Source of the DNA: Mobula birostris
Lineage: Eukaryota
Assembly (NCBI RefSeq): GCF_030028105.1
Contig: NC_092383.1
Location: forward strand, 86,819,921 to 86,883,920
DNA: 64,000 nucleotides
Direction: 5' to 3'
In this document: one piece after another, positions 50,177 to 51,640 of the stretch
Numbering within the stretch: position 1 is the stretch's first letter
Layout: each line of letters begins with the position of its first letter
The notes under the pieces: model-generated
What the model was told of the DNA's origin: nothing
Databases searched by the model: none
The model's input: only the letters and a program-made list of their open reading frames with translations
Translations under genes and position numbers: made by a program

Positions 50177-51640
50177 CAGTTAAAGTCAGAAGTTTACCTA
50201 CACCTTAGCCAAATACATTTAAACTCAGTTTTTCACAATTCCTGACATTTAATCCTAGAAAACATTCCCTGTCTTAGGTCAGTTAGGATCACTACTTTAT
50301 TTTAAGAATGTGAAATGTCAGAATAATAGTACAGATCGATTTATTTCAGCTTTTATTTCTTTCATCAAATTCCCAGTGGGTTAGAAGTTTATATACACTT
50401 TGTCAGTATTTGGTAGCATTACCTTTAAATTGTTTAACTTGGGTCAAACATTTTGGGTAGCCTTCCACAAGTTTCTCGCAATAAGTTATTGGAATTTTGT
50501 TCCATTCCTCCAAACAGAACTGGTGTAACTGAGTCAGGTTTGTAAGCCTCCTTGCTTGCACACAGTTTTTCAGTTCTGCCCACAAATTTTCTATCAGATT
50601 GAGGTCAGGGCTGTGTGATGGTCACTCCAATACCTTGACTTTGTTGTCCTTAAGCAACTTTGCCACAACTTTGGAGGTATGCTTGGGGTCATTGTCCATT
50701 TGGAAAACCCATTTGCGACCGAGCTTTAAATTCCTGGCTGATGTCTTGAGATGTTGCTTCAATATATCCACATAATTTTCCTTCCTCATAATGCCATCTA
50801 TTTTGTGAAGTGCACCAGTCCCTCCTGCAGCAAAGCACCCCCACAACTTAATGCTGCCACCCCCATGCTTCACGGTTGGGATGGTGTTCTTCGGCTTGCA
50901 AGCCTCACCCTTTTTCCTCCAAACAAAACGATGGTCATTATGACCAAACAGTTCATTTTTTGTTTCATCAGACCAGAGGACATTTCTCCAAAAAGTAAGA
51001 TCTTTGTCCCCATGTGCGCTTGCAAAATGTAGTCTGGCTTTTTTATAGTGGTTTTGGAGCAGTGACTTCTTCCTTGCTGAGCAGCCTCTCAGGTTATGTC
51101 GATATGGGACTCGTTTTACTGTGGATATAGATACTTGTCTATCTGTTTCCTCCAGCATCTTCACAAGGTCCTTTGCTATTGTTCTGGGATTGATGTGAAC
51201 TTCCTGTGCCAAAGTACGTTCATCTCTAGGAGACAGAATGCGTCTCCTTCCTGAACGGTATGACGGCTGCGTGGTCCCATGGTGTTTATACTTGCTAACT
51301 ATAGTTTGTACAGATGAACGTGGTACCTTCAGGCATTTGGAAATTGCTCCCAAGGATGAACCAGACTTGTGGAGGTGCACAATTTTTTTTCTGAGGTCTT
51401 GGCTGATATCTTTTGATTTTGTTTGTAAACTTCTGACCCACTGGCATTGTGATATAGTCAATTAAAAGTGAAATAATCTGTGTGAACAATTGTTGGAAAA
51501 ATTACTCATGTCATGCACAAAGTAGATGTCCTCAACGTCTTGCTAAAACTATAATTTGCTAATATGAAATCTGTGGAGAGGTTAAACAATGAGTTTTAGT
51601 CACTTCAACCTAAGTGTATGTAAACTTCTAACTTCAACTG
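50177..51640 (-). mobile_element. Tc1/mariner transposon of the Sleeping Beauty type, near full length
   Basis: TA on both sides (50175-50176, 51641-51642); IR/DR ends cagtt(g/a)aagt(t/c)agaagtttac. Transposase frame 50403 to about 51415 has one in-frame TGA (50622-50624), intact WSDE, DND and IEN residues, and a deletion removing the start codon. Confidence 0.95.

Follow-up and report, generated by a model that had tools for sequence, protein, structure and literature searches.

The element and its surroundings

The window (the whole 64-kb stretch of DNA that was analyzed) contains a single Tc1/mariner element of the Sleeping Beauty (SB) clade at positions 50177-51640 (1464 bp), with its transposase encoded on the minus strand. 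The element lies in an AT-rich spacer between immune-receptor genes, and no other Tc1 coding remnant was found in the 64-kb window in tblastn searches that used nine Tc1 transposases as queries. A V-domain exon on the plus strand of the same window (29502-29852) had four protein matches, three of them named and all three from batoids, specifically Mobula birostris (79%), Rhinoraja longicauda (74%), and Leucoraja erinacea (73%), the matched proteins being CMRF35-like molecules and paralogues. Judged from these matches the host is a batoid, although paralogues do not pin down its species, and a teleost host was ruled out because the named matches of the V-domain exon are batoid only.

The element is bordered on both sides by a TA dinucleotide, reading TA followed by CAGTTAAAGTC at one end and CTTCAACTG followed by TA at the other. 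Specifically, one side of the TA target-site duplication is located at 50175-50176 (...gatata, then CAGTTAAAG) and the other at 51641-51642 (CAACTG, then tagtat). The termini read CAGTT(A/G)AAGT...ACTTCAACTG at the start and end of the element, and a search of all 64 kb for the terminal 27-mer gave exactly two hits, one per end, when zero would be expected. Each end has an IR/DR layout, its outer and inner direct repeats lying 195-196 bp apart, for a total of four direct repeats. The right IR/DR, as named in the transposase orientation, spans 50177-50404 on the minus strand (outer direct repeat 50177-50210, inner direct repeat approximately 50373-50404) and, like that of SB, extends into the ORF region at its 3′ end. 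The left IR/DR, likewise on the minus strand, spans 51413-51640 (outer direct repeat 51607-51640, inner direct repeat approximately 51413-51444). The TA duplication and the long terminal inverted repeats with outer and inner direct repeats are those of the SB clade (the IR/DR subgroup), in which inverted repeats of about 200-230 bp are expected, with two transposase-binding direct repeats in each, one outer and one inner.

Based on reading frame, PDB, and Pfam evidence, the transposase remnant comprises 338 codons (50406-51422, minus strand), corresponding to codons 3-340 of the SB frame, and is terminated by a stop at 50403-50405. The frame contains zero frameshifts and zero indels in the coding sequence (CDS), along with one internal TGA, and its start codon is absent. 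The premature TGA is at codon 268 (50622-50624, minus strand), where fish copies have TGG (Trp). In four sequencing runs, position 50622 was C on the plus strand in approximately 95% or more of the contig depth, making codon 268 a TGG. The catalytic triad (D153, D244, and E279) is intact and has the 34-residue spacing of a DD34E transposase. The two halves of the frame matched the SB100X catalytic domain (PDB 5cr4; E = 1.3e-88 and 2e-32), and further matches were made to the SB PAI subdomain (2m8e; E = 2e-22) and to a third SB chain (5unk; residues 61-118, E = 4e-22). The latter two, together with the Pfam domains HTH_SB (PF25787; 1.2e-25) and HTH_Tnp_Tc3_2 (5.7e-14), both of which were above the cut-off, represent a paired-like bipartite DNA-binding domain. 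Pfam DDE_3 matches fell just under the curated cut-off (26.4 and 27.3 bits vs 28.6).

Comparison with the 1639-bp fish element exposed a 171-bp internal deletion, with its junction at about 51420-51421 (minus strand), that corresponds to positions 223-393 of the fish element and has taken away the 5′UTR and, with the ORF's first 5 nt, the ATG. Loose contig ends at 51420 in sequencing runs from four other organisms show sequence that is missing from the ray copy. Two further deletions, each of 2 bp, are both in the inverted repeats, and CpG decay is also apparent, with 10 of the 29 CpGs in fish being TpG or CpA in the ray copy. An autonomous SB element needs an uninterrupted ORF with a start codon, and here the frame is broken by the TGA at codon 268 and has lost its ATG and 5′UTR. 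The element is therefore a non-autonomous, decaying, and dead copy. This anatomy agrees with that in a preliminary description of the same DNA, which had claimed complete IR/DR-type ends with a TA target-site duplication, a frame without frameshifts that had one TGG-to-TGA stop and had lost its ATG, and intact DDE residues.

Similarity to salmonid-type elements

For DNA-level comparisons, ten loci from metagenome contigs were found by a scan with the best protein hit, while the ray side was represented by one copy, the window element. Among these loci, that on metagenome contig ODBT01001456.1 (L001) is a complete 1639-bp salmonid-type element (L001:1113-2751); its 340-codon frame is uninterrupted. 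The ray element was 92.3% identical to L001 in DNA over all shared columns, the non-coding IR/DR included, and 90-92% identical to the remaining loci, while the fish loci were 93-99% identical among themselves. When compared to the fish majority states, which served only for counting differences, the ray element showed 106 substitutions over 1464 positions (7.2%). By region, the left IR/DR was the most divergent from the fish majority (11.8%), followed by the CDS (6.6%) and the right IR/DR (5.4%), and the two ends were 88% and 95% identical to those of salmonid-type elements. The unequal divergence of the two IR/DR ends may be due to chance in 220-bp samples, or may arise because the right end overlaps the ORF.

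At the protein level, 296 of 337 aa were identical to the L001 frame (87.8%, i.e., 41 differences), and identity to the proteins P0001 and P0002 was 89% over 266 aa, the latter value being that of the closest relative among the matches listed. The preliminary description had put the identity to the SB protein near 90%, an estimate that our values (87.8-89%) support, but its count of about 28 substitutions was too low because only approximately 267 residues had been compared. Its remark that the inverted repeat matched closely is in keeping with the identities of the two ends. Between the transposase and the salmonid-type frame, dS was 0.12 and dN 0.06, giving a dN/dS of approximately 0.5. The 90% cluster of the best hit (P0002) includes proteins from Oncorhynchus and Hucho, and the relatives of the element are thus of the salmonid-type family. 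Moreover, with its CDS being 6.6% different from salmonid-type copies, the element has >80% CDS identity to other SB members, which, together with placement on the SB branch, is how membership was defined in a previous survey (PMC9777934).

The element, but not its flanks, was also present in data from elsewhere. Logan contigs from four other organisms numbered 60,000-190,000 per run on 50177-51640 and zero on the flanks. In total, 24 sequencing runs carried words of the element only, and the flanks were found in no run searched. Metagenomes often contain Tc1 DNA from fish, which may be assembled into consensus-like contigs, and animal feces metagenome runs were among those that hold words of the element.

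In overall design, the ray copy has the same architecture, minus the deletion, as salmonid Tc1-like elements (Tss1-type; SB10/SB100X, with PDB structures 5cr4, 2m8e, and 5unk). The L001 element and the ray copy both have a TA target and IR/DR ends of approximately 225 bp with four direct repeats, and the 340-codon DD34E transposase of L001, with its paired-like DNA-binding region, follows the same plan as that of the ray copy. Unlike salmonid SB, the ray copy resides in a cartilaginous host, has seven diagnostic residues of its own (see below), and is dead. Elements from Prochilodus, Coilia, Trichomycterus, Sparus, and Dicentrarchus (P0004, P0007, and P0008) belong to the same SB clade and have in common with the ray copy some residues that appear to be ancestral. 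However, their protein identity to the window copy is only 76-81%, and they form a distinct clade.

A ray subfamily within the SB clade

A second copy was recognized in a predicted protein from Mobula hypostoma (RefSeq XP_062921089.1; P0028), in which the first ~205 aa are an SB-type transposase remnant. This protein is annotated as 'endoribonuclease LACTB2 isoform X2', although the transposase remnant makes up approximately 85% of it and is followed by about 37 C-terminal residues that are not from the transposon; the gene model is chimeric with a transposon, or else the copy has been exonised. The window copy and the M. hypostoma remnant have a signature of seven residues that sets them apart from the salmonid type (I63, R96, Q97, C115, S136, A230, and L257). 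All seven were present in just these two of 149 relatives, with the other 147 having three or fewer. Additionally, each ray copy has private changes, 12 in one and 22 in the other, over about 200 columns. Because the seven residues are common to both ray copies and were found in no other relative, comparison of these proteins shows that a resident ray-specific subfamily exists. Its founder differed from the salmonid consensus by only about 3.5-4% in protein.

At several sites where the salmonid type has changed, the ray copy resembles the Coilia/Prochilodus type, namely in the F of 'HQFC', the P of 'KIP', the E of 'YCEKL', and A230, and Coilia- and Prochilodus-like residues are likewise retained in its C-terminal third. 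Since the ray copy retains residues common to Coilia and Prochilodus, the donor is not among the sampled salmonid copies. The ray lineage is instead a branch of its own within the SB clade, and the copies sampled do not show an origin 'from salmonids'.

In our protein tree, which had 41 rows, the two ray sequences paired (SH-aLRT 82) and were placed within the SB clade (SH-aLRT 98). The SB clade itself took the form of a trichotomy between the ray pair, the salmonid-type sequences (SH-aLRT 96), and a group containing Coilia, Prochilodus, and P0004 (SH-aLRT 99). The named relatives that were placed farther out in the tree were from teleosts only, and among the named proteins in the best 120 matches the sole non-teleost was Mobula. 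Measured from the salmonid-type node, the ray branch lay approximately 0.04 changes per site away and the other teleost SB lineage approximately 0.12. Because of the trichotomy, in which the ray lineage could be sister to all teleost SB sequences, the shape of the tree alone says nothing on vertical descent.

Probable horizontal transfer and its alternatives

The reading that best explains these results, and a very probable one, is that the element entered the ray lineage by horizontal transfer and then amplified and decayed there. We infer that a transfer took place, that it ran from the teleost pool into the ray, and how old it is, with the direction being judged only from where diversity lies. 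Specifically, the founder of the ray subfamily would have entered the batoid germ line horizontally out of the SB pool of teleosts, whether directly or by way of a vector, and would then have amplified in the ray genome. The copy analyzed here would have inserted by cut-and-paste at a TA in the spacer between immune-receptor genes of a Mobula-type ray. Later, it would have lost its 5′UTR and ATG through the 171-bp deletion, probably by abortive gap repair, as is typical for such deletions, and also gained one nonsense codon and approximately 4-5% point mutations. From the split between shared and private residues, private decay accounts for roughly two thirds of the 7.2% divergence, which, given the slow rates of elasmobranchs, suggests that the insertion is tens of millions of years old.

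Horizontal transfer by another route, with the element moving from ray to teleost, or reaching both lineages from some third source such as a parasite, a prey species, or a virus, is unlikely. In its favor, the retention of Coilia/Prochilodus-type residues indicates that the ray founder did not come from the sampled salmonid consensus, and no relative was nearer than 89% among the matches listed. However, every named member of the SB clade, and likewise of its sister clades, is from a teleost, and it is in teleosts that the diversity resides. Moreover, no relatives of the element were found in IMG/VR viral contigs, and these therefore gave no hint of a viral vector.

Vertical descent is far less probable still. 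Under this scenario, an SB-type family in the gnathostome ancestor would have been kept in rays and teleosts alike, and the similarity between them would have been maintained through constraint. The tree leaves open a position of the ray pair as sister to all teleost SB rows, and a dN/dS of 0.5 implies that part of the divergence arose under selection on the transposase. However, cartilaginous and bony fishes diverged roughly 450 Myr ago, and unconstrained sites should be saturated over this time; dead transposon copies evolve neutrally. The dS of 0.12, which we set against this established split, and the 88-95% identity of the non-coding ends are far under the neutral change expected over about 2 x 450 Myr, rendering vertical descent poorly supported. 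Furthermore, the window copy, with its stop codon and lack of an ATG, is dead and so free of constraint, and the salmonid-type node is nearer to the ray branch (0.04) than to the Coilia/Prochilodus-type teleosts (0.12). The preliminary description had argued that such similarity would be hard to reconcile with vertical descent if the host were an elasmobranch. The batoid-only named matches of the V-domain exon and the sister copy in M. hypostoma bear out that host, and the dS and the 92.3% DNA identity bear out the argument. Additionally, a survey of SB elements was without a chondrichthyan host (PMC9777934).

Finally, although salmonid-type Tc1 DNA often rides in unrelated data, such as feces metagenomes and metagenome contigs, it is scarcely credible that teleost DNA has contaminated, or been mis-joined into, the ray assembly, given that the element sits within a continuous batoid immune-receptor stretch, is bordered by a clean TA duplication, is 7.2% diverged from the fish majority, has a 171-bp deletion that is not among the best-supported joints of four fish runs, and has all seven residues of its private signature in common with the independently annotated M. 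hypostoma protein.

A horizontal transfer from the teleost pool into rays would have precedents in other Tc1 families. Zhang et al. (2020; PMC7070016) showed that in ray-finned fishes it is Tc1/mariner elements that dominate horizontal transfer. Kuraku et al. (2012; PMC3516227) described Tc1 transfer between teleosts and lampreys, and PCR for their Group 1 element gave no product in cartilaginous fish. In a survey by Jia et al. (2022; PMC9777934), the SB clade was found in 107 Actinopterygii and one mollusc but in zero chondrichthyans, and the one chondrichthyan recorded had a ZB-like element only. The teleost-lamprey transfers and this ZB-like element resemble the present case in that a teleost-centred family is found in a vertebrate lineage separated for more than 450 Myr but has diverged much too little for vertical inheritance, and differ from it in involving other Tc1 families and other recipients. 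In the literature searched, we found no report of SB-clade elements in rays, or of SB or Tc1 transfer into sharks, skates, or rays, which is not proof of their absence.

A known family and a known process thus gain a new class of host, the cartilaginous fish. Transfer of Tc1 elements between aquatic vertebrates is well documented, and the case extends that picture while leaving it unchanged. The transposon in question is among the best studied in vertebrates, and besides adding cartilaginous fish to its hosts the case would provide a concrete, datable transposon transfer across the divide between bony and cartilaginous fishes. SB elements may have a wider and older distribution across cartilaginous fish, which would count against the transfer.

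In a 2025 study, Tc1/mariner elements made up 2-3% of skate and ray genomes, compared to 0.03-0.14% of those of sharks and chimaera, and transfer was left undiscussed (PMC12361510). If the family identified here is abundant, an invasion from outside would offer a mechanistic origin for this unexplained excess in skates and rays over sharks. We give about even credence to a broader scenario, in which the SB clade invaded the germ line of manta and devil rays (perhaps of myliobatiforms or batoids) across classes, amplified there as its own subfamily, and fed the batoid Tc1/mariner expansion, such that copies with uninterrupted frames may persist.

Among teleosts, the 90% cluster of P0004 spans Prochilodus (Characiformes), Trichomycterus (Siluriformes), Dicentrarchus, and Sparus, a range that fits recent teleost-to-teleost spread. 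The Trichomycterus member of this cluster sits inside a 1006-aa 'fibrillin-2' model, which represents a transposon-chimeric annotation.
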